Source of the DNA: Epithemia pelagica | Lineage: Eukaryota > Protista > Bacillariophyta | Reading direction: 5' to 3' | DNA: 64,000 bases | NCBI GenBank assembly: GCA_946965045.2 | Contig: OX337237.1 | Location: 2,046,001-2,110,000, forward strand | Translations under genes and position numbers: made by a program | Shown: positions 26,270-43,124 of the stretch, piece by piece | Numbering within the stretch: position 1 is the first letter of the stretch | How the letters are laid out: every line of letters begins with the position of its first letter | The notes under the pieces: model-generated | The model's input: the letters and a program-made list of their open reading frames with translations, nothing else | Databases searched by the model: none | Told to the model about the DNA's origin: nothing

Positions 26270-28319
26270 GGTAACAATCTCAACAGTATTCAGAAGAGAG
26301 TTGTATGCCGTAACCTTACCCTTACTCAGCCGCAGGGAAAGATTGCAAGTAGGAATAGCGTTTTGGTCTCGTCTCTGTGTTGCGATTTGCGATTGTGTCC
26401 AATTGCGTCATCGTGAGTCACGCCGCTAAATTCAGTCGTAACGACTCAGAGGTAATCCCTCGGTATCAGTGTCCACTGCTTAGCTGTTTTTTGTCTGTGC
26501 CACCTTCATAGGTTCCCAGGTGGACACAGACAGAAAATTTCCTTTTTGACGCAAATGGAAATGACTAAGTTGCAAATTGGCACGCATACCCAGCTGGAGT
26601 TTTCGCAGTTCATGAAACTGACGCATGCCCAGCAAGCGGCCCTGCGTGGATGACGGTTGCAGAATGCGCCATCCAAATTCCAAATCCCCCATAAAATCAC
26701 ACAGAGGCCATCACCCACAATGGCATGGCATGAATTGTCGCCTTTCATGCAGTTGAGGTAAGTTTGAACGTACAAAAATGTCTCCATGACAACAACAGCT
26801 TTTGAACTGTCATTCTAACTTCTCCCTCACACTTGTATTCGTTTTTCTCTTCTGATATTCAACATTCGACAACTGTCTCTCTCTCTGTCCACTTCATTGA
26901 GAGTGAATGTTTGTGCCTATGGAATGTCAATTCTCCATTCGAGCCTCGGCTTAAAATTGGAGACCACATAGAGCTTCTTTCTTTGTATACTACTCCTAGG
27001 AGTTTCTATCAGAAGTTTATTTCCTATCTTATTGATTTTGTAAGATCGTGCGTGTTATTGCCGTGCTTTCAACCACCATGACACTCTGGTGAAGGTTTGG
27101 GGCCATCTTGAAGCAACTGATCGACTGTGTGATCTACGAAGACTAAATTGAGTAGGCCTAGTGGCAACAAGCTGCCTTAGTTTGTTGTCATCTCTAGGTC
27201 TATGTACTTGAGTATCCGACACACAAAGAAAGGTTCTTGATCTGTGATCGACATGGAGATGGACTAAGCGAAGCACAATGATGAGAGTAAAAATCCATGC
27301 TACAAAGATAAGAACACAACCAATATTCAAGGAGCACTACGATTAGAGCAAGGAAAAGTTGTGGCAAACGGCCTACAATGACTTGTCCTCCGTTTGATTG
27401 CGACAAAATCAAAGGAGCACCAACCATCAGCATTAACAGGGACAAAGATTAATGAGAAAACGTGTGAGAAAACTACGCAGGACATGAAAGAAGCTAAGAG
27501 ACAAACAACAAGCAACAAGAGAGAAAAACCAACCAAAATACTGCTTCAGGTCGCAAGGCTTCATAAAGAGCTCGCTTCATGGTCAATGTCGAATGTCGAT
27601 GCTTTTGACACCGCGTGAGATTTTTGTGACAAGACGAGAGTCGTGTGAAAGGATTCCAAATTTGAATCGTGGTCACGGTCACAGGAAGATGCTAACCGCC
27701 AACTGTCACTTGCACGCCGGCATTTCCACCAGGACGAGGAACTATATTGGTGAAAAGGACAGACGAAAAGTGAAATTTTCTGTCTGTGTTCACTTGGGAA
27801 CCTATGAAGGTGGCACAGACAAAAAACAGCTAAGCAGTGGACACTGATACCGAGAGATATTCGCTGTTAAGATTTATATATTCGTCTAAGTTCAGTATGA
27901 ACGCGATGGGTAGGCCGAAGGCTTTGGGGTCTGGGGTGGAACTTCCCAGAATGACCAGCTGTTCTGTCAACGGATGCAGAATAGCAGAAGCAGTACAAAT
28001 GAGAGAAAAGGAGCGTTGTTGAAACCGTTATATATATACAGCTACGAATAGTTTAATGGTGAGTCATGGTATGATTTTGGGGTGCACCGTCAACCGCGTA
28101 ATCTGTGAGTATGGTATTTCCCTAAGCATATCTTTGGTATTAATGTAATACTCCCAACCATCTGTTTATGACTGAAACAGGACTTTTACATTGAATGCTT
28201 GTTTGGGGCGTTATATTTTCGGTATCGGGCCTGCGTTCTCTCCTGTAACGTTCGTGGAGAGTGTTCTGTGCCATGCTTCCCATAACCATTCGTCGTCAGG
28301 TGGAAGCAGAACGAACATT

Positions 28320-28353
28320 GGGAGTGGGGAGTGGGGAGTGGGGAGTGGGGAGT
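28320..28353 (+). repeat. (GGGGAGT)n microsatellite, G-quadruplex-forming consensus
   Basis: GGGAGT followed by four perfect GGGGAGT units, read directly. Confidence 0.9.
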
Positions 28354-28426
28354 TCATGCCTTAAAACTGCTCCCGTACAATCACCAACGTAGAACAGCTA
28401 CATCAGGGCTGGCCTATCGAGAACAG

Positions 28427-29345
28427 GTTATCATTTCCCTACATAACGTATCGGCATAAGACACGAGCAACAAGAAGAATACCATGTTTGTTCGAGTGAT
28501 TGTCGATCGATTGGGATTCCCGAACGAAGAGAGAGAGAGCATGTTTGTTCGAGGGATTGTCGATCGATTGGGATTCCCGAACGAAGAGAGAGAGCATGTT
28601 TGTTCGAGGGATTGTCGATTGATTGGGATTCACGAACGAAGAGAGAGAGAGGAACCAAGAATTCTCATGTGCAGAAGCGCAGTCGTTCAAAGGAGGTTTT
28701 CTTGAGACAGGTTATCATTTCCCTACATAAGCTGGCCACCCAACAAACGACGCCAGTAGCGTATCGGCATACGACACGAGCAACAAGAAGAATACCATGT
28801 TTGTTCGAGGGATTGTCGATCGATTGGGAAACCATTGGCGAATGCGGTTTGCTTTTCACCAAACGGCCCATGGTGTTTTCAAACCAAATGGCGCCCAACA
28901 AAACGGTCGCCAGTAAAACGGCATAAGACACGAGCAACAAGAAGAATACCATGTTTGTTCGAGTGATTATCGATCGATTGGGATTCACGAACAAAGAAAT
29001 AGATAGAGAGAGAGAGGAACCAAGGATTCTTGGTGGAATTGGACATTCTCATGTGCAGAAGCGCAGTCGTTCAAAGGAGGTTTTCTTGAGACAGATATTA
29101 TGGGTATCATCGAGAACTGGTTATCATTTCCCTACCTAAGCAAGACACGAGCAACAAGAAGAATACCATGTTTGTTCGAGGGATTGTCGATCGATTTGGA
29201 AACCATTTCAACACCACCTTCTTGAGGGACCAGAAGTCTTCCGCATGCGGTTTACTTTTCACCATACGGCCCATGGTGTTTTGAAACTAAATGACGCCCA
29301 ACTAACGGTCGCAAGTAAAACCCAACAAACGGTCGCCAGTAAAAC
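28427..29345. repeat. Modular imperfect-palindrome repeat cluster
   Basis: Six copies of ATGTTTGTTCGAG(G/T)GATT(G/A)TCGAT(C/T)GATT at 28484, 28541, 28596, 28797, 28951 and 29168. Additional modules (GACACGAGCAACAAGAAGAATACC x4, GTTATCATTTCCCTAC x3, an ATTCTCATGTGCAGAAGCGC..GAGACAG block x2) occur in shuffled order. Confidence 0.9.
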
Positions 29346-30200
29346 CCTGGACGTCATGATGGTCGTCGGCATCTCGTGAATGACATCAAACATGGTGGCG
29401 GGCGTAAACATGTATTCGGTCACACCGTGCAGGGCACTCCCACCAGATTTGTCCTAGGCGGCCAAAATCCCTTGACCAGGGACCTTAATTTTGGTAACAC
29501 ACAAGGGAGCTGACGAAGACCCATCAACAAGTCTCTCAAGTTTGGAAGGAGATTGTGGAATTGTGTGATGAGAGCTTGAATACCCCCGGCATTGGCCTCC
29601 TTGTCACATCTTGGTTCGAACAATACCACACTTGGCCGCGCGCGTCAATAATTTTCCCAATTGTGGTATTAGGTTGATGAGTTGGACACCACTGTCCCTT
29701 GTCCCATTTCAAAAAGGGCACCACCTTCTTGAGGGACCGCAAGTACTCCGCATTCGACTTTCTTTACACCACATGGCCCATGGTGTTTTCAAACCAAATG
29801 GCGCCCAACAAACGTTAACATGTATTTTCGATCACAGAGTTCCTTCCTTCGACAGTCATGATTGCTGATGGCAATGATCGAGGGGTATATTCTTCAATTG
29901 CAAATTTTGGTGATTCCGATTTTTTTTTCAAGTTCCGTTGTTGCGCGGCCAAGGCCAAATGGAGAGCGTGTACGACTTTGTTGCTCGCACTGGGTCGTCA
30001 AGAGAAGACGGACAAAATTGTTTACTCGTCGGATGTTTCTGTTCTCGCAGTAATGTATGTTTTGCCGACACTGATTGTCGTCCTAAGTAGCCATCAATGC
30101 GGCTAACAACTCTATTTTTCGGATATATAACTACTAGAGCAACAAATAGGGATAACGTGAATCGAAACAAATCTACTATAGATATAATCTAAGTGATCTA

Positions 30201-30734
30201 CTAATCTTCCTTGTTTCCGTCAACAGCAGAGTCTTCAACTTCCTTCTGGTTATCGTTCTTGTTACCAGTTTCTTCATTGCTGGTGTCGCGAATTTCCGAT
30301 TCATTCATCTCACCAAAGGAAGACTCAAAAGATTCTTCGTCTTCTTCTGACCAGTACCAGAGGTGGCGGGACAAAGCCTCCTGGTCAACTTTCATCATCA
30401 CAAGCTCAAGCGTGATGGTGTTATCAATCACATCACTATCCTCGTTGAAGACGTACGAGTTCTTCGGGATCAGCTTGGAATTATCGATACGGCAAAGATG
30501 TGCAAGGTCTGTAAACACACCCAAGAAGTTTTTTACCTGGTTCACGACGTGACCAGCAGTCGTATGTTTTTTAATAACGTCAAGTTTCACTCGCAAACAG
30601 TCACTGACCAAGACATAGCAACCAACGAATTGATGAGGACAGTGAGCCACAAGTGTTTTCATCCGAAATGGTGAAGTCCCCATGGTGGGCATATTACCAG
30701 GGTGATGGATGAATCCAGGACGCTTCGACGACAT
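30201..30734 (-). CDS. Hypothetical 177-aa protein with acidic tail (candidate Helitron cargo)
   Basis: Part of a 253-codon open frame; ATG at 30734 is preceded by ATC as in the actin genes; tail EEDEESFESSFGE..EVED. No homology recognised. Confidence 0.4.
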   Translation of the reverse strand: MSSKRPGFIHHPGNMPTMGTSPFRMKTLVAHCPHQFVGCYVLVSDCLRVKLDVIKKHTTAGHVVNQVKNFLGVFTDLAHLCRIDNSKLIPKNSYVFNEDSDVIDNTITLELVMMKVDQEALSRHLWYWSEEDEESFESSFGEMNESEIRDTSNEETGNKNDNQKEVEDSAVDGNKED

Positions 30735-30819
30735 GATAAAAGCCAATTTGCACAAATATGACACCCATGATCTGCGCCTGTGATGACGTGTACAGATGAC
30801 TTTGTCACCACCTGCCAAA

Positions 30820-30968
30820 CCCTGGTTGAACCCCAAATCCTGATGATGCCCCCGATCTGTCTGGTGGTTGAACCCAATCTGTCTGGTTGAACCCAAATCC
30901 ATCTGGTCGAGCACCAATCCCTTGTTGGACCCAGTCCCTGGTTGAACCACAATCCAACCCACAATCCC
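30820..30968. repeat. Short iterated GGTTGAACC(C)AAATC-type direct repeats between two divergent ORFs
   Basis: Exact GGTTGAACC at 30824, 30866, 30885 and 30940, with degenerate copies near 30905 and 30923. Confidence 0.8.
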
Positions 30969-31001
30969 TGCGCAACAATCAACTGATGTTCCATATTCAT
31001 C

Positions 31002-31870
31002 ATGCCCCCAACGAAGAAGGTAAGTGGTGATTTTGTTTCTTATACTTCATTGAGGCATTTTCATCTAAGTTTGATTGTTGTTTGTGCAAGAAGTTCAAGT
31101 TTGCTACCGCCAAGAAGAAGGGAGTTGCTCCCTCTCCCGGTCGTAACAAGACCAAGGTAACCGAGGTCCATTCCGAACGTTGTGGTCCGAATGGACAGTT
31201 TATTGTTGCATACATGCAACTTGCTGGGACCACGAAGCCCCGATCAGGCTTCATGGAGCCTGTGTTTGAGTTGATAAAGGACAAGGAGTCGCAGCTTTTC
31301 GATGAGTTTGATATCAGAATCGAGAAACTCTATCGTCGTGTTTCCCGTGACAATGATAACACAATGTTGAATGGAAACCCCGACAAGAATGGTCGGGAGT
31401 ACAACTGGTCGGTTGTCGTAGGATTTTGTGAGGATGCCGAAAACGAGCTTCAGAAAGATCAAATGATGAAGAAGATGTGTGAGACGATGGTCAGGGTGAT
31501 GACTGCGGAGGACAAGAAAAATGGGTTTCTACGCACTTACAAGACCAATGAAGCAGGACTTGTGCACTCCAAGAGTCCCCCTCGATCGTTGGACGAAGTC
31601 TTACCAAATGAGAATGTCGCCATGATTGTTGAGAATTATTTTCCACTTGAAAAGTGCCAGGACCTATACGAGTTGTTGGGTGGTGAGGAGGAAGGTGTGG
31701 CCGATTTGGTGTTCTCACGTGACCGCTACGACATGTTCGCGAAATGCGCGGTGGACAAGTGGGGATACCCCAAGGGTGTGCGTGAAAAGCAGGATGCCTC
31801 TCAGGATCAGGAGGAGTGTAGATCAGAGGTTGACGAATCCAAAATTGGCGACGAACCCAATGACGAATGA
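31002..31870 (+). CDS. Hypothetical ~266-aa protein with basic N-terminus (candidate Helitron cargo); probable intron 31020-31090
   Basis: 262-codon open frame 31082-31870. Upstream catcATGCCCCCAACGAAGAAG|GTAAGT donor joins in phase to give MPPTKKKFKFATAKKKG. The acceptor is AAG, so it is uncertain. Confidence 0.55.
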
Positions 31871-32092
31871 AAATGGGCCCAAGGAGAATACAAACAGACA
31901 TAACGGTTGCGACAAAATTAGTAGTAATAACACTTTGGCTGACGAGCCGACGAGCCCCATGTTAGCGAGTAAGCGAAGTTGTCTACTTTCTACTTTCTAC
32001 TTTGCGTCGACCAAATTATGCAAATCTTACTGCCACAAAATTTATGCAGCTGCTTGGTAACACTCAGTGTTTCCATAGCAGGCCTAGCTAGC

Positions 32093-35000
32093 ATGTATGT
32101 TAGAGACTCTTCCATTGAGAAAGGGGTTGCTAAAGCAGCAGCATGCCGTGACTCCCTATTGTATAAAGACGGAGACAAGTTTTTTCCAAAAGTGTGTTGT
32201 GTTTGCGACCAGTTCATCAAGGTTGGACATGAGAAATGTTTGAAACTAGAAGATCTAAAGCACAGACGAATTCAACCCAAGTTTCTGAAGGCAAATCTGG
32301 ATTTCACCCATTGCAGCATCTCAGAAGACAGCAAGAAAATAATCAAGGGGCATTACACACAAAGTTGTTATAATGCAAGAAACACTGCACGATATCGCTT
32401 TCTGCAGCAACTTGTTCTTTCCCCATCTTCATATGCATTGAAAAAGGGGCAGAAAAGTGAAGGACTGGGATGTTGTAGCACTTGTTACAATACTATTATT
32501 CAAATGAAGAAAGAATCATGTGATCCTGACAAGGTCCCCAAATATGCCATATTTAATGGATTGATGTTTGGTCCCACACCTGCCCGTTTGCAAGATTTGA
32601 ATGAAGTTGAGCTGGCTTTGATTTCACCTGCAAGAACAAACAAACATATCTTTTCGTTTACCGCAGGGTCACATAAATCTATCAAGGGGTGGCATGCGTT
32701 GTACTACAATGACCTAAATGCAGTAAATGGAGTGATTAATTGGTGTCGTACAGCAACAGGGCAGAATTCAACTAATGATAATGACACGCAAAATGGGCAG
32801 GAACTCCCTGTACACTGGGCTGAAACTGCATTGTTTGATGAAGAAAGTATTGGTGATGATAATGACAGCAATGAAGATATCGAAAGTACTGCCAACAACT
32901 CCACTACAAATACATCTGAGGGGAACACCGGCAATGACGGCAAAGAAGAAACTGAGCATCATGACGATGAAGACATTCAAGAAGATCCACAGGATTCTCC
33001 ATTACTACCACAAATTGCTGTCATTCTAACAGGACCATTCACACCCAGACAGAAAGCTCTGACATACCAGCGTACAAAGGTTCGTTGGAATAAGGTCCAT
33101 ATGGCAGTTCAATGGCTGAAGGACAACAATCATTTATACAAAGACTTGGATTTGCCGGGCGACAAAATCATTGAGCCAATAATTATTGACAAAAGTGAGG
33201 ACATTGATGAAACAGCTTCATCAAATGTGGAACAAGTCTTTGAAATAACAGCTGTTTTCCCAGACTCCGATGAACCACAGTTAATCAATGGCGGCTGTTC
33301 ATCACAAAATGATTTCAAGCAGGTAACACTTGATTGTCTTTTGGCTGACCACGAGAATAAGGATGCAACTTTGATTTCGCGTTCATCAAAAACATTATTG
33401 AAAGACTATCAGGGCGAAAATCTTCTTAAGGCTTTTCCGCTTCAGTTCCCATTTGGTATTGGTGCATACGACAGTCAAGGTCAACCACATTCTGGCATGA
33501 AATATTTTGAATATCTCATGAGACATTCAACTAAAAGTTTCCATCGTGCCGATTTTGTGTGCATTATTCACAACATGTTTGAGCGACAGAGAATGGTGTC
33601 AAACTCTTATTTGAGAACCAGTGAAGCACAGGCAGAATCATTTGCAACAATCACAGATAAGCAGATTGAGGAAGCTATACAACGACATCTTGATTCCGCA
33701 CAAGGATCAGCTCCAAGTGACAATTTTTTGAAAAAGATGAAAGCAATTACTTCATCAATGGGACACACAGGTGCTGCTGCAAAGAAAGCACGGCAGAATA
33801 TGTTGGCAATGATTGCAAGATTTGGCCTGCCAAGTGTCATGTTTACCATTACACCTGAGGATGCAGTGAATTTCAGAATACGTGTAATGGCAAACAAAAA
33901 AACTGGTGAAAGGAATCCTCCTGATCCAAACACAACACCGGTTCATGACCAAAACAAATATATACTTGAGTGTGGTGGAATTCGGCAAGTTCATCCAGGG
34001 CTTTGTGCCATTGAGTTTGAAAATGTGATAGCAATTACTATTCAGCATCTACTTGGTTGGGATATGAACAAGAGGAAAACATAAAAGATCTTGGAATTTT
34101 TGGTGATCTGATAGCGTGGTGTTATGCAGTTGAGGAACAAGGCAGGAAAACACTTCATGCACATTTCCTGTTGTATCTGATGAAATGGTCTGTGCTACTT
34201 CAAGGACTTGGAGATGAGGCAACAAGAGAACGGTTCTCGGAACAATTGGTTGAATATGCATCAAAAGTTATGAGCACATACATGCATGGTGAAGCCATTC
34301 CTTCCTGTGTTCAACAAGATTGTACTTCAAATGTTTTCGAATTCTGCTCAAAACAAGACATCAGGAATTTGCGCACAAAACTTGGAACTACATCACTTGG
34401 TGGGAAAGCGATTGCCAAGTGCACAACATGTAACACATGTATGACAAGTGAGGATTTGGTTTTCTCCCGATTGAAGGAAATCTTCCAAACAATGACTTTT
34501 ACTCAAGAGCAAAGAGAAAATGAAACCAATGCCGAGTCAGATTTGTCTGACAAAACAAAACTCACCAATGCCATGGAGTTACTCTTAATGCGGGAACAGC
34601 TCAAGAAGCCTTCCCGGATGACAAGCAAAGGCGTATTTGTCATGAACGTATTGCGCAATCTGCATCGTTCAAAACATGCAAATTCCTGCTTCAAGAAAGG
34701 AGAAGAATGTCACATGCATGTTCCATGTGCGTCATGTGACGAAACAGAATTAAAATTTTCAGCAGACACGACTGATTGGTTTGACTGGAAAGGAAAGGAG
34801 CAGTCAAGACAATTGTTCACCTTGAACTCTAAACGGGCCCATGCTGATGCATTTGTCAATATTCACAGTTCCCACGCAAGCAAGCTATTTGGTTGCAATA
34901 CAAATGTTGTCACTGGAGTGGACGGAGGAAGTGTCATGTATATGACATGCTACATTTCAAAGAACACACAAACAGAAGACAATGAACTTTTTACAAATTC

Positions 35001-37974
35001 TGCAAAACATATGATCAAGAAAATGAGAGAGTCCTTACTCCAACTTGAGGACGAGTCTTCGAACACAAATCAAGAGCCAGGAGGAGAAGACAATGAGAAC
35101 GACAGAGTGGCTACAGTGATGAAAACATTGATTGGTGCAATGTTGCTTTCCACCTCTGCTCATATATGCAGTGCTCCTATGGCATCTTTTTTGGTGAGAA
35201 ATGGAGGTTCACGTTTTCATTATTCTCATGATTTTGCATATGTCAATTTGAACCATTTTGAAACAGATGGTCTGAATGATTTGTCTGTTGATTCCATTGA
35301 GGGGACACCTTTTTTGACTTCAAGTGTCGCAAACTACTCATTGCGTCCAGAAGAACTAGAAGGCACTTGTTTGTATGATTTTTTGTCCCAGTTCACAGTG
35401 AGCAGAAGAACAAAAAGCAGTCTGGAATGGATAAAGGACCATCCATCAAAAAATCATCTTGGTGTGCAGGCAAGCAAACACATCAAGGTTCCTGTGGTCA
35501 ATTACAGAGATTTCATGAACACCAGTTCTTTTGGAAACCAACCGATTGATTCTATTGAACTACCTGAAATTCTCGAGGAGGAGCATCATGCTATGGAACT
35601 TTATGCCAAGAAGGCAAACTTACTGTTTCATCCCTTTCGTTCAGTTCAAACGGATTTGACGGTTGCAGGCTCATACGTTAGAAGTTTCCAGGAGGCACTT
35701 TGCAGTGGAATTATAACAGAAGCACATTGTGAGATTCTTGCAAATATTCAGGATTGTCGCAATAGTTTGGAAGCTGGGCGACCGTGTGATTCTCTTGAGT
35801 CTGAAACATCATGCCCGTCAGCTGCTTGTGGCCATGGGTCTTATAATGAGAACAATGCTGAAGAAACCAATCACGATGACATTGACAGTGCATTTGAAGA
35901 ATTGGTTGAAACAATGAATGAACTAAATGACTCAGGACTTCAGTTGAGAACGTTGAACAACATTTATCAGTTTTCCTCATCAATCATCTGAAAATGTGGC
36001 TCTGTAAAATGTGGTGTGCAAAACATTGCGACTCCCAATCTTGGAGAACGTGTGGGTGCAAACGTTTTTGAAACCCAAAGCGAGGAAATGGATCCAGATC
36101 AACAGCATCCAAGTGGTCTAGACGATGATGATTTCATTTCTCGTTATTCAACTTTTGTGACAAAGAAAGCACTTCATGAGCTAGCAATATCAAGAACAGA
36201 AAGGATTACCATGGATGATGGACACGACGAAATAAAAGCAACTGGAACATTGAAGAATATCCGGGAATATGCTGTTCATCACTTCAGAGGTGATGAAGAC
36301 CAGGAATATGCATTCGAGGCCATAATGTCTGCATTTGTACTTCGCCTCCACGATGAAGCAGCAAAAGACACGACTGGACAAGAACAAATGCCTGCATTCC
36401 GTAGAAGAAAAATGAATCACACAAGAGAGACTTTGCAGAAGGTTAATCAAGGATCCCAGTTCATATCCTTTCTTTCTGGAGCAGGTGGATCTGGGAAAAG
36501 CCATGTCATCAAAACACTTGTGAGATATGCCAAAAATCTCTGTTCCAACCTCAAGGTCAGGTATGACAAACGTACAATTGTTGTTACAGCCCTTACTGGT
36601 GCAGCAGCTGTTGGAATCAATGGTGAAACGACACATATGGCTTGTGCATTAAACAGGGAAGTTACCAATGAACCAGAAGAATGGAAGAATGCTTATCTCT
36701 TGATTGTAGATGAAATTTCTTTTGCATCAAGAGATGTTGTTGATAAACTGGATTACAAATTGAGACGCATTTTGAAGCCAGATCACAAATTTGGGGGGAT
36801 TCCAATTGTCTTCGCTGGAGATTTTACGCAGCTCAAACCAGTGAAAGCTCAGCCCTTGTATTTATTCAAAGACTTTGAAAAATGGTATGAATGGGTCCAT
36901 ACTTTTCTTGAGCTAAAAACAAACCACAGGTTTCATTTGGATCCACCTTGGGGTAACTTACTTTCAATATTCCGGGATGAAGGGCCAAGTGACAGAGACG
37001 TTCAGAAGATTAACACTCGGGTTGTTGGTTCAAGAGGTGGACCAACAGAAAGTGATATACCCCCAAATGTGGTATATGCAACAAAAACCAACCTTGATTG
37101 CGCTGCCATCAATGATGCTATTTTAGGGAAACATCTCGAAAACACCCATTCAAAAGATCCAACTGTACAGCCACCACTACACACAGTCTGTATAAAAGCC
37201 TCCAATTTGAAGTGGAGGAAAGCTGGGACACGTTCTGAATACATCAATTTTAACAAGTCGTGCGAAGATATCCTCTATGCAACATGTGGAGAAGGACATC
37301 TACAAGGAAAAGACAACAAAAGATATGACCCTCTGCTGAAACTGTACTATGGAAGACCATTGTGCATCAATGAGAATAAAAAAGTTGATTCATGTATTGC
37401 AAATGGAGCAATGTGTGAATTCAAGGGACTTGTTCTCAAACAAGGTGTTACGATGAATGACATGGAAAAAATAATGATTGATGGGTTCTATGTTTGGAGT
37501 ATAAAGGTCTCCCAACTTGAAGGACTAAAAGTGGAGATGTTGGATGGTGGACGTAACCAACTCGTCATTCTAAAACCAGAAACTGTCTGTCAACAAGTAC
37601 AGTTTCCATTGCCACTGCTTAACATGACAAGAGTTCGGAAAATGATGAAGATGGCCCAGCTTCCTGTGAACGTGTCAAACGCAAGAACCGTCCATAAACT
37701 GCAAGGACGGTCAATTGAGTTCCTCTACATATCGAACTGGGATTACACTGGAAACTGGAACTATGTTTGCTTATCAAGAGTTTGTGAAATGAAGGGCCTC
37801 TTTTGAGCAAAACCTTTGATTGCAGAAAAGTGTAGCGGGATGTCAGCGGAATGTAAAGACTTCCATGTCTGCTTTAGAACTACGAAGCATCCACCACCGA
37901 GGGTTCATATAGATGACAGATATAGCTCTAAAAAAATAGAAGCCATCATATACCTGTATTCGGATGTGGAATAG
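32093..37974 (+). pseudogene. Helitron Rep-helicase (HUH endonuclease + PIF1-family SF1B helicase), interrupted in three places
   Basis: Segment 1 has KVRWNKVHMAVQWLKDNNHLYKDL, AFPLQFPFGIG and FGLPSVMFTITPED. Segment 2 has the HUH motif EEQGRKTLHAHFL and Tyr motif YMTCYISK. Segment 3 has Walker A GAGGSGKS, Walker B LIVDEIS, FAGDFTQL, TVHKLQG and YVCLSRV. There is a frameshift near 34075 and in-frame TGA at 35989-35991 and 37804-37806. Confidence 0.92.
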
Positions 37975-40320
37975 CTTATGCAGTGGGCTATAAGTGACAC
38001 CATTTTCACATTCCAAAACATGTTGATACTAGAGTTGTTCTCACGCGAAACAAATGGCGACAAATCTTATAGTACAATAGCCTCAAGTGGAACAGGAACA
38101 AGTATACCATCAAAGTTGCCGCACCCAAATTGCATTGCATTATCAGATACCTTATGGCGTGGACTATAAGTGACAACAGTTTCACATTCCAAAACCTGTG
38201 GATACTAGAGTTGTTCTCACGCGAAACAAATGGCGACAAATCTTATAGTACAATAGCCTCAAGTCGAACAGGAACAAGTATACCATCAAAGTTGCCGCAC
38301 CCAAATTGCATTGCATTATCAGATACCTTATGGCGTGGACTATAAGTGACAACAGTTTCACATTCCAAAACATGTGGATACTAGAGTTGTTCTCACGCGA
38401 AACAAATGGCGACAAATCTTATAGTACAATAGCCTCAAGTCGAACAGGAACAAGTATACCATCAAAGTTGCCGCACCCAAATTGCATTGCATCATCAGAT
38501 ACCTTATGGCGTGGACTATAAGTGACAACAGTTTCATATTCCAAAACATGTGATACTAGAGTTGTTCTCACACGAAACAAATGGCGACAAATCTTATAGT
38601 ACAATAGCCTCAAGTCGAACAGGAACAAGTATACCATCAAAGTTGCCGCACCCAAATTGCATTGCATCATCAGATACCTTATGGCGTGGACTATAAGTGA
38701 CAACAGTTTCATATTCCAAAACCTTTGGATACTAGAGTTGTTCTCACGCGAAAAAAATGGCGACAAATCTAATAGTACAATAGCCTCAAGTCGAACAGGA
38801 ACAAGTATACCATCAAAGTTACCGCAACCAAATTGCATTGCATCATCAGCTACCTTATGCCGTGGACTATAAGTGACAACAGTTTCACATTCCAAAACCT
38901 GTGGATACTAGAGTTGTTCTCACGCGAAACAAATGGCGACAAATCTTATAGTACAATAGCCTCAAGTCGAACAGGAACAAGTATACCATCAAAGTTGCCG
39001 AACCCAAATTGCATTGCATCATCAGATACCTTATGGCGTGGACTATAAGTGACAACAGTTTCACATTCCAAAACATGTGGATACTAGAGTTGTTTTCACG
39101 AGAAACAAATGGCGACAAATCTAATAGTACAATAGCCTCAAGTCGAACAGGAACAAGTATACCATCAATGTTGCCACACCCAAATTGCATTGCATTATCA
39201 GCTACCTTATGACGTGGACTATAAGTGACAACAGTTACATATTCCAAAACATGTGGATACTAGAGTTGTTCTCACGCGAAACAAATGGCGACAAATCTAA
39301 AAGTACAATAGCCTCAAGTCGAACAGGAACAAGTATACCATCAAAGTTGCCGCACCCAAATTGCATTGCATTATCAGATACCTTATGGCGTGGACTATAA
39401 GTGACAACAGTTTCACATTCCAAAACATGTGGATACTAGAGTTGTTCTCACGCGAAACAAATGGCGACAAATCTTATAGTACAATAGCCTCAAGTCGAAC
39501 AGGAACAAGTACACCATCAAAGTTGTCGCAGCCAAATTGCATTGCATCATCAGCTACCTTATGACGTGGACTATAAGTGACAACATTTTCACATTCCAAA
39601 ACCTTTGGATACTAGAGTTGTTCTCACGCGAAACAAATGGCGACAAATCTTGTAGTACAATAGCCTCAAGTCGAACAGGAACAAGTATACCATCAAAGTT
39701 ACCGAACCCAAATTGCATTGCATCATCAGCTACCTTATGACGTGGACTATAAGTGACAACAGTTTCATATTCCAAAACCTGTGGATACTAGAGTTGTTCT
39801 CACGCGAAACAAATGGCGACAAATCTTGTAGTACAATAGCCTCGAGTCGAACAGGAACAAGTATACCATCAAAGTTACCGAACCCAAATTGCATTGCATC
39901 ATCAGATACCTTATGGCGTGGACTATAAGTGACAACAGTTTCATATTCCAAAACCTTTGGATTCTAGAGTTGTTCTCACGCGAAACAAATGGCGACAAAT
40001 CTTATAGTACAATAGCCTCAAGTCGAACAGGAACAAGTATACCATCAAAGTTGCCGCACCCAAATTGCATTGCATCATCAGATACCTTATGGCGTGGACT
40101 ATAAGTGACAACAGTTTCTTATTCCAAAACCTTTGGATACTAGAGTTGTTCTCACGCGAAACAAAGGGGGACAAATCTTGTGGTACAATAGCCTCAAGTC
40201 GAACAGGAACAAGTATACCATCAAAGTTGCCGAACCCAAATTGCATTGCATCATCAGATACCTTATGGCGTGGACTATAAGTGACAACAGTTTCATATTC
40301 CAAAACCTTTGGATACTAGA
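37975..40320. repeat. 176-bp tandem repeat array, 13 full units plus a partial unit
   Basis: CTATAAGTGAC anchors at 37988, 38164, 38340, 38516, 38691, 38867, 39043, 39219, 39395, 39571, 39747, 39923, 40099 and 40275 (one unit is 175 bp). Confidence 0.99.
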
Positions 40321-40715
40321 ATTCCATAACTACTCCCAGGAGTACAGAGCAAGTTCAGTTACACCGTCTCTCTTTATTCTCACTCCTAAGTAGTCTACAT
40401 ATTTCAGTACTTCTGGTTCGTTCAGTCACGGATTCCACTGCACAGATAACAGATACTGAACTTAGTCGACTCTTTACCGCGAAGCGGTCCAATCTAATGG
40501 ATCAACGCGCTCAGGATTAGCAATATTTCGATAGATGTGCGCGACTGGACTGGAACTGGAAGGGGGAAGAGGTGGGAGCAAGTTTCGGATTTGCTGCACC
40601 AAGTGCACGACTTCGAGAAAACGACGGAGACCTGCACATTGTCGAAACCACCTCCCGTCGACGAGATGAGGACACAAAATACTTACCAGTGATATCAAGA
40701 AAGCGAACAACAAAA

Positions 40716-43124
40716 ATGTCAGAAGGAGAAGACTTTTTTGGAGGTATGGGAGGAATCCAGTCCATGGGAATCCTGAACGCTCTTCGGACGGGTGATCCCA
40801 GAATTGACATGGTCTTGGCCATGTGCTTCCCCTTTATTGTTAAGTTCCTTCTGGATAGCTTTCGTCAAGTTTGGCAGAAAATTCAGGACATGCTGAACTG
40901 GTCTCCAGACATGGGCTATCATGAGCGTCGCATTGTGCACAAGACGAATCGCGATCGATGGGGTGGTGTCAGCAACGATGACGAAGACACACAAAATACC
41001 ATTCTCATCAAGGCAATTGATATGTACCTACATTCCCAGATCAAACTGGATTTGAGACAGGCTAATATTGATCTGACGTCGACAGAAGATAAGAATGCCA
41101 GTGTGGGACAGCGGCACAATTATTACTACTACGACGATTCGGACGATGACGACGACGACAGCAAGACACTTGTTGGAGCTTTGTCAAAATATCGAATTGT
41201 CAAGAAACCTCCTGTCAACGAATGGCATAGTCTTGGGAGCCACGGACCGACAAAACAAGAAGGAAACGACGAGACGATGGACAAAGCAAGCGAAGATGTC
41301 GACCAGTCATGCGAAGATGTCCTTCTTCGTATTGAGAGACAAGAGCATGATAGCAGTGGAAACGACAAGACAGGCAGTGGTAACTCTGGAACTCAGCTGG
41401 TCAATACTTATCTCTTTCAATCGGAGTCTGGGGAGGCCATTGACGCCTTCATTGATAAGGCCTATCAGTGGTACTTGAATGAACTTCGGAAATTGGATGA
41501 CAACTCACGATACCTGTATGAACTAAAGTCAAACTCCTTCAGTCGTAAGGACGATGAAGATGATGGACCTTCGGGTCGTATCTATACCCGATACCGGCTA
41601 TCGGAAGAAAAAACTTTTGGATCGCTTTTCTTTCGTGAAAAGGAATCCCTCCTCAGATTGATCCAACACTTTACAAACCGCTCTGGAAAGTACAGTATTC
41701 CAGGTTATCCACACAAGCTAGGGCTGTTGCTCAGCGGTTGCCCTGGTTCAGGGAAAACCAGTTTCATCAAGGCTCTAGCCCAACACACTGGCCGTTCCAT
41801 CGTTAATGTTCCCTTGGCACGCGTCAGCACCAATGCCGAACTCATGTCAATCTTCTTCAACCATCGCAAATATGTTGAAGGCGAGAATATGCCGGCAAAG
41901 TTAGGTTTCAAGGACGTGATTTTCGTCATGGAGGATGTCGATGCCGCATCTAATGTTGTCAAACGGCGAGATGGCAAACTCAAAGGTGACAGTGAAGAAT
42001 CAGCGGATGAGCAAATTCTTTCCGGAAATGATCTACCGACCCCAAAATCAGTGTGGCAAATGCTTTTGGAAAGTAATGAATCCGATTGCCGGGAACTGGT
42101 GGAGCAGCTAATTGAAAAATCTCCGCGGCTCAAAACCAAGGCGACCCAAGCGAGCGTTCTCACCCAAGCGGTTCACCGATTGCGGGCAATGCCTGGATTG
42201 GGTCTCGTGGGGGCCGTGGAAGTTGGTGATGATCCTGCCCTTGAAAAGATCGGTGCTGATACCCTGTGTACTGTTAACCAAATCATGGATGACACTTCCA
42301 CAGTCGATCGATACTTGGCCTCCCAAGCGCGAATTCTCATGACTCGCATTGAACAAGGGGCAGAAATTGATGACGTATTCGTGGATGCCTTGTTAGGGAA
42401 CAATGCTTTCGGAGATGTTTGCTTATCGCACCTCAAAACGGCAGACAAGACAAGTAGCGACCGTCTCAGTCCAGGGGGGTCCCTGGATCTGTCCAAGTTA
42501 GCAGCCGGGGATGGTGTGTTTTCCGCGATGATGGAAGGGTTGTCAACACCTACGACTGCTGCATCAACCTCGGCCAATACTGAGACTGGCAGCCTCAAAA
42601 ATGTAACCAGCCGAGCTGTTCAAGGTCCAGTTAGTGCCTCATCAGGGGCAGGAAGCAAGACTGTCGGAGGAGGGTTGCTGGATGGATTTGGAAGCAGCCT
42701 CTGGAAACCTGAGCGTGATCAATTGAATCTGAGTGGTTTGCTGAATGTGTTGGACGGCGTTGTGGACTCCCCAGGACGAATCGTAATTATGACAACAAAT
42801 CACGTGGAGCATTTGGATCCGGCACTCATCCGTCCTGGACGTATCGACAAAAAGTTGTTCTTGGGATATATGACGGCGGTGGATGCAATTGCAATGTTGG
42901 AGCACTACTTCCAAATGGCACTTACAGATTCCCAGCGACAGCGTGTAGAAGATGTAATCAATGGAACAGGATCCTTGAGTCAGGGAAAAGCTCGTCCTCT
43001 CTCCTTGACTCCAGCTCAAATTGAACAGATGACGGCGGAGCACGATGAAATTGAGGATATGATCGGTGCGTTGGAAGCGAAAGGATCCAAGTGCTTGTCT
43101 TCGCCAAGACTCGCTCGAAATTGA
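40716..43124 (+). CDS. BCS1-like AAA+ ATPase with long insertion inside the AAA domain
   Basis: Walker A GCPGSGKT, Walker [10 protein letters not shown], then [36 protein letters not shown], which is typical of the BCS1 clade. N-terminal hydrophobic segment; likely ATG at 40716. Confidence 0.88.

Follow-up and report, generated by a model that had tools for sequence, protein, structure and literature searches.

A 176-bp tandem array is an internal module of a Helitron2-like transposon in the diatom Epithemia pelagica

Introduction

In the diatom Epithemia pelagica a Helitron-type gene is followed downstream by a tandem array with a 176-bp period, and the locus raises the question of what this array is: a chromosomal satellite in contact with a transposon, a product of the transposon's own terminus, or a part of the transposon itself. 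The units of plant and animal centromeric satellites are 150–180 bp long. Canonical Helitrons start with TC at the 5' end, finish with CTRR at the 3' end, carry a hairpin ~11 nt before that end and insert into an A|T target. An original prediction, made from the DNA of this locus, brought these two backgrounds together and proposed that rolling-circle replication had reiterated a terminator-like segment at the 3' end of a Helitron gene, and had thereby seeded a satellite of centromeric length that the element could spread.

Elements of the Helitron2 type have asymmetric terminal inverted repeats, palindromes near both ends and a Rep-helicase without endonuclease, and they make no target duplication (Thomas et al, 2014, PMC4067079). 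Motif 2 of Rep occurs in a Helentron S form, with S between G and P, and a Helitron L form (PMC4067079). HINE, DINE-1 and Cg_HINE elements are derived from Helentrons and hold central tandem repeats, often of 140–180 bp, between a left and a right module; the right module of the HINE type consists of an inverted repeat and a 3' palindrome, and a spread of satellite-like DNA by such elements has been proposed (PMC4067079, PMC7492417). The size range of these central repeats takes in 176 bp (PMC7492417). Helitrons are also known to capture host DNA (PMC7492417).

Here, the array and its surroundings were analyzed in a stretch of 64,000 nucleotides, referred to as the window (contig 10, positions 2046001–2110000; its element copy is called C10), and compared with the 60.5-Mb, 23-contig assembly. 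Positions are those of the window unless another contig is named.

Results

Structure of the array and of the surrounding element

Tandem Repeats Finder (TRF) placed the array of the window at 37971–40320 (176-bp period, 13.4 copies, 95% matches, 0% indels), and a manual split gave 13 units, one of which was 175 bp long, and a 62-bp final partial unit. The predicted 176-bp array is thus real, with a unit likeness of ~95%. The core motif expected in each unit or as a close variant, GATACTAG, occurred unchanged in 13 of 14 units of the window and took the form GATTCTAG in the remaining one, and the array was confirmed to end directly after GGATACTAGA, the last letters of the partial unit. Its start had been placed at the stop codon of the helicase; in fact it lies 165 bp past this codon (TGA, 37804–37806). 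The unit includes some stretches of 15 bp with almost no variation. Searches of the unit against Rfam and for tRNAs gave no match at E ≤ 1, and an origin from a tRNA or a known RNA was dropped on this basis. A conserved 27-mer of the unit had zero exact matches in the metagenome collection. A motif of the GTTCAGT type recurs in the termini of the element but is absent from the unit.

The array lies within an element with the following features:

27881–40493, + strand: whole Helitron2-type element of 12,613 bp, with a sharp 5' boundary in 5 copies and a sharp 3' boundary in 8
27882–27902, + strand: 5' terminal inverted repeat TCGTCTAAGTTCAGTAT (27882–27898), the reverse complement of 40453–40469 at 16 of 17 bases, with a nested hairpin, GTTCA-GTA-TGAAC (27890–27902), in the DNA fold
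28416–29321, + strand: 5' block of short sub-repeats, found by TRF and many BLAST self-matches, including a 57-bp tandem of three copies at 28483–28651
30204–31961, both strands: three accessory open frames without Pfam match, 31031–31867 (+, 279 aa), 30204–31046 (−, 281 aa) and 31494–31961 (−, 156 aa), with matching positions in copies
31979–37806, + strand: Rep-helicase gene, broken here (Pfam DUF6570, Helitron_like_N, PIF1)
37807–37970, + strand: unique spacer from the helicase stop to the array, without significant similarity to the unit and conserved in other full copies
37971–40320, + strand: 176-bp tandem array, 13 units and a 62-bp partial unit, by TRF, manual split and unit comparison
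40321–40493, + strand: conserved 3' tail of 173 bp, 94–100% identical in 8 copies, with the inverted repeat ATACTGAACTTAGTCGA (40453–40469), the hairpin ACCGC-GAA-GCGGT (40476–40488, by folding) and CCAA(T) (40489–40493)

The limits of the element were drawn from the comparison of copies. The 5' boundary at ~27881 is common to five copies with 97–99% identity, and the flanks beyond the 3' boundary at 40493 are unrelated among the eight copies in which it is sharp. The GC content of the element is ~40–41% from about 32000 onward, as against 45–50% in the flanks. The 5' end reads (T)TCGTCTAAGTTCAGTAT, and the inverted complement of this 17-mer, ATACTGAACTTAGTCGA, sits 24–40 nt from the 3' end. 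The 3' terminus is GCGGTCCAA(T) in the eight copies, one of which has a C-to-T change, and the 3' hairpin is conserved in all eight. Hence the array is not the terminus of the element, as the original prediction had supposed, since 173 conserved bases follow it. No CTRR terminus was found, the CTAG of the array being internal to the element by 173 bp. With this Helitron2 design (PMC4067079), the canonical TC...CTRR premise of the terminator idea does not hold.

The base before TCGTC was T in both copies where it was read and the base after CCAA was T in all eight, and the T at both junctions fits a T|T target rather than the canonical A|T. No target-site duplication was seen, as there was no direct repeat in the flanks of C10 and C2c, the two copies with both flanks. 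Flank searches for an empty site of the window insertion found none: the sequence on the right is single-copy, and that on the left belongs to a different high-copy repeat, which ends at 27854. The end of this repeat covers 27481–27854 and stops 26 bp before the 5' end of the Helitron; it gave >200 first-look candidates with 89–99% identity. On the other side, an open frame for an AAA ATPase (40572–43124) starts 79 bp past the end of the element. Members from giant viruses (Nucleocytoviricota) predominate in the protein-atlas clusters nearest to this ATPase, which is a lead only and uninformative on taxon.

At the 5' end, the unit of the 57-bp triple repeat is partly palindromic. The first 300 bp of the element were matched in at least 35 other places at 71–79% identity (247 first-look candidates), for example at 1394686 on contig 3 and 1891509 on contig 8. 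Since the 3' tail has only eight copies, these wide matches indicate that the 5' module is common to a far larger set of elements.

The predicted Helitron gene upstream of the array was recovered as a Rep-helicase, but a broken one. It consists of three open frames (31979–34084, 34057–35991 and 36016–37806) with DUF6570, Helitron_like_N (E = 1.4e-10) and PIF1 (E = 6e-22) domains, and its lesions in the window copy are a 1-bp deletion at ~34075 and an in-frame stop at 35989–35991. The natural helicase stop, TGA at 37804–37806, marks the real C-terminus, because related families in the same genome align to the last residue. The helicases of these sister families have identities of 75–80% and 57–59% to that of the window. 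Motif 2 of the Rep HUH domain is VEEQGRKTLHAH (RKTLHAH, with HAH present), which matches neither the S form of Helentrons nor the L form of Helitrons. Neither the 596-aa window frame nor the 1310-aa frame of the C17 copy had a match to an endonuclease (Exo_endo_phos-type) at E ≤ 0.1, and on the Pfam domain content of these two frames the element does not fit a Helentron in the strict sense.

A further claim was that the first unit of the array grades into the coding tail. It rests on a ~13-nt match, ATCATATACC versus ATCAGATACC, and found no backing in alignments. Local alignment of 37807–37971 with a unit dimer gave z = 0.6 against shuffles, and alignment of the 173-bp tail with the unit gave z of about −0.6, both at chance level. 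A degenerate unit before or past the array was rejected accordingly.

The terminator-like hairpin, TCCAAA-ACC-TTTGGA, is present 2 nt before CTAG as described, but it is perfect in only 5 of the 14 window units. Genome-wide, the perfect stem occurs in 40 of 160 units, and the most frequent variant (CCTGTGG) does not fold better than shuffled sequence.

Copies of the element in the genome

Of ten first-look candidates for regions with the unit, nine were scored, in assembled sequence only. Nine arrays with a total of ~30 kb were found on 5 of the 23 contigs, and one contig alone has five of these arrays. All nine arrays lie inside copies or fragments of one element family, and free-standing arrays were not found among the scored regions of the assembly. 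The genome-wide map therefore bears out the linkage of the unit to the Rep-helicase family, and with it the proposal that the satellite is part of a Helitron-type element which spreads it. The prediction of a centromere-like satellite is not supported, given this small total, the few contigs and the five arrays on one of them; there is no major array on each chromosome.

The assembly contains five near-identical helicase genes (98–100% amino-acid identity), and four of the five have an array in the same orientation 146–168 bp downstream. Five copies are full-length, with a common 5' end, a Rep-helicase gene and the 173-bp tail, and measure 12.6 kb (window), 17.0 kb, 18.6 kb, ~25 kb and ~46 kb, the last two with nested insertions. 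In four of them the order is Rep-helicase, spacer of 146–168 bp, array and tail. In the fifth, on C2, the helicase (~6.09 Mb) and the array (~6.05 Mb) have ~26 kb between them, mostly unread. The 173-bp tail directly adjoins an array in eight of eight genomic copies. Flanks differ between copies on both sides, and the coding regions of the copies diverge by 0.6–1.5%.

The array of the fifth copy is split by a 5.4-kb LTR retrotransposon (contig 2, 6052545–6057921), whose 755-bp LTRs are 100% identical and which is bordered by a 5-bp target duplication, ACAAG; this insertion looks very recent. The short arrays besides the five full copies are 3' fragments severed by later insertions or duplications. 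Two of these are the halves of a ~12-kb tandem duplication on contig 2 (~2167458–2172350 and 2179438–2184330), each containing an array fragment, the tail and flank, with 99.97% identity over the 3.9 kb upstream of the array. Both fragments were severed by a sequence whose end resembles the LTR end of the 5.4-kb retrotransposon, and the duplication could be an assembly artefact. Contig 13 has its short array in a segmental copy of the C17 3' end, 1.5 kb long. Short non-autonomous derivatives with the unit were not found, and there are only eight tails genome-wide.

The Rep-helicase is broken in all four copies that were read through. The 1-bp deletion at ~34075 is common to the window copy and the C17 copy, which are closest relatives and differ by 0.59%, so at least one of the two descends from an already defective parent. 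This shared defect suggests that the element may have been mobilised in trans. The three accessory frames are open in C10 and C17, although the Rep-helicase is broken there; the C2c copy has two of them, at different lengths, and the third was not found there. A search of the accessory frames against Pfam found no family.

Array length and unit variation

Based on the assembled contigs, in which repeats may be misassembled, the number of units per array was 13 (window), 38, 48, ~40 and ~20, with 2–5 units in fragments. The edges of the array are identical across copies over this full range of 2–48 units. The first unit is one and the same odd variant in four of four full copies read, and the final partial unit is one odd variant in six of eight copies, which indicates that the array edges are inherited by descent. 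Units within an array diverge by 5–8%, compared with 0.6–1.5% between the coding parts of copies; most unit variation therefore predates the copies. Far more units than expected from array size have their nearest neighbour within the same array, and the unit tree has 35 changes of array label versus ~86–90 in the shuffles inspected, with arrays that are far from monophyletic. This clustering of units by array points to local homogenisation as well.

A higher-order step of 352 bp had been suspected from alternating variants in the middle of the window array. It is absent: unit identity is flat over lags 1, 2 and 3, with values of 95.7%, 95.1% and 95.0%, respectively. A 6-unit higher-order repeat is present in the C6 copy, the only copy with such a peak (94.1% at lag 6 versus 87–91%). 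The same copy has a 194-bp variant unit produced by an 18-bp junction duplication. The 18 extra bases were also considered as a relic of a 20-nt segment before the array, which was rejected in favor of local duplication at the unit junction.

C10 and C17, which are sister copies, hold 13 and 48 units, respectively, and are collinear at the first unit only, in spite of the 0.59% difference between them. Turnover between these two arrays is faster than simple inheritance predicts.

Discussion

The array is an internal and inherited module, with the gene on one side and the 3' cis signals of the element on the other. We consider it highly probable that it represents the central-repeat module of an autonomous-type Helitron2-like transposon, copied passively, later resized and most likely neutral. 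The array sits between the stop codon of the Rep-helicase and the 173-bp 3' cis module with its subterminal inverted repeat and hairpin. Because it is located between both termini, it would be copied passively at each transposition, as expected from the known Helitron mechanism. Once inserted, and perhaps already during insertion, arrays would grow, shrink and become partly homogenised by unequal exchange or replication slippage, as the patterns of copy number and variants imply. Neutrality is assumed here, and the array would most likely be a neutral passenger. The fast turnover between the arrays of C10 and C17 counts against this reading.

The origin put forward in the original prediction, in which rolling-circle replication re-used the hairpin and CTAG as a terminator-like segment and thereby made the array at the 3' end, draws on three features: CTAG or a near variant in each unit, the 6-bp hairpin 2 nt before CTAG in some units, and the closure of the array right after CTAGA. 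In eight of eight copies, nevertheless, the element continues for 173 bp past the array and closes with another hairpin and CCAA(T), and its termini are inverted and of the Helitron2 type, not CTRR. Moreover, the hairpin is imperfect in three quarters of all units (perfect in 40 of 160) and in the last unit of six of the eight copies, and both tail and spacer are unrelated to the unit. This origin is largely refuted, and we give it next to no credence. Hardly more credible is that the unit is a host satellite, possibly centromeric, which a Helitron captured or preferred as an insertion target. The 176-bp period does belong to the classical satellite size class, and capture of host DNA by Helitrons is known (PMC7492417). 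However, every array scored occurs together with the element tail or spacer, save for pieces severed by later insertions, the junctions are identical in all copies, and arrays are confined to 5 of 23 contigs with five on one; the conserved 27-mer also lacked an exact match in the metagenome collection. A centromeric or chromosomal satellite was rejected on the distribution and constant transposon context of the arrays in the assembly.

The array might instead be a working part of the element, as a protein platform, a nucleosome-positioning or heterochromatin block, a source of small RNAs, or a needed spacer between the gene and the 3' signal. The recurrence of 140–180-bp units at the same position in unrelated families of the Helentron/HINE kind from insects, mites and bivalves would agree with a function, as would the retention of the array in every copy and the near invariance of some 15-bp stretches. 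Full-length copies range from 13 to 48 units, though, the unit lacks the GTTCAGT-type motif of the termini, and the copies are all young, so that retention proves little. We regard a working part as improbable, and there is no support for a function of the array in this analysis. A rather unlikely addition to the passive module concerns the timing of its changes in length, namely that array length is reset during rolling-circle transposition when slippage or a switch of template occurs on the single-stranded intermediate. If so, the 13 versus 48 units of C10 and C17 without collinear order would be the footprint of this process, and transposition itself would drive the expansion of the satellite as well as its dispersal.

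As an internal module of this kind, the array belongs to an element whose classification is supported by several characters. A Rep (HUH) domain fused to a PIF1-type helicase and the absence of a target duplication place it in the Helitron superfamily, and inverted termini, palindromes and an endonuclease-free Rep-helicase place it in Helitron2. Like Helitron2, it combines asymmetric inverted termini and palindromes at both ends with the lack of an endonuclease and of a target duplication; unlike Helitron2, it has extra 5' open frames and a long satellite-like array, and its Rep motif 2 is RKTLHAH instead of the usual RG(S/L)(P/L)HxH. With canonical Helitrons it shares Rep and PIF1 helicase, TC at the 5' end and the missing target duplication, whereas its 3' CCAA(T) in place of CTRR, the T before the 5' end in two of two copies and the inverted termini set it apart. 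The closest structural parallel in arrangement is with HINE, DINE-1 and Cg_HINE, which likewise have a left module, a central array and a right module; their right module, too, combines a subterminal inverted repeat and a short 3' palindrome. The T at both junctions, which fits TT-type targets, and the dispersal of a repeat by the element are further likenesses. In contrast to the short non-autonomous carriers of the HINE type, the carriers here are full-size (12.6–46 kb) and hold the Rep-helicase gene, and the arrays are long, with up to 48 units and 45% of the element. Compared with centromeric satellites, the array is similar in unit length, in partial concerted evolution and in the higher-order repeat of one array, but it differs in amounting to ~30 kb on 5 of 23 contigs and in always lying in a transposon flanked by genes.

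The array has no bearing on diatom centromeres. With it, an alga joins insects, mites and bivalves in a known pattern, the dispersal of 140–180-bp arrays by elements of the Helentron/Helitron2 type. What makes the case slightly unusual is that the carrier is full-size and retains its transposase gene, and that the arrays have up to 48 units. The element offers a clean system for asking why this position in such elements breeds satellites, and whether arrays within elements later seed chromosomal satellites.
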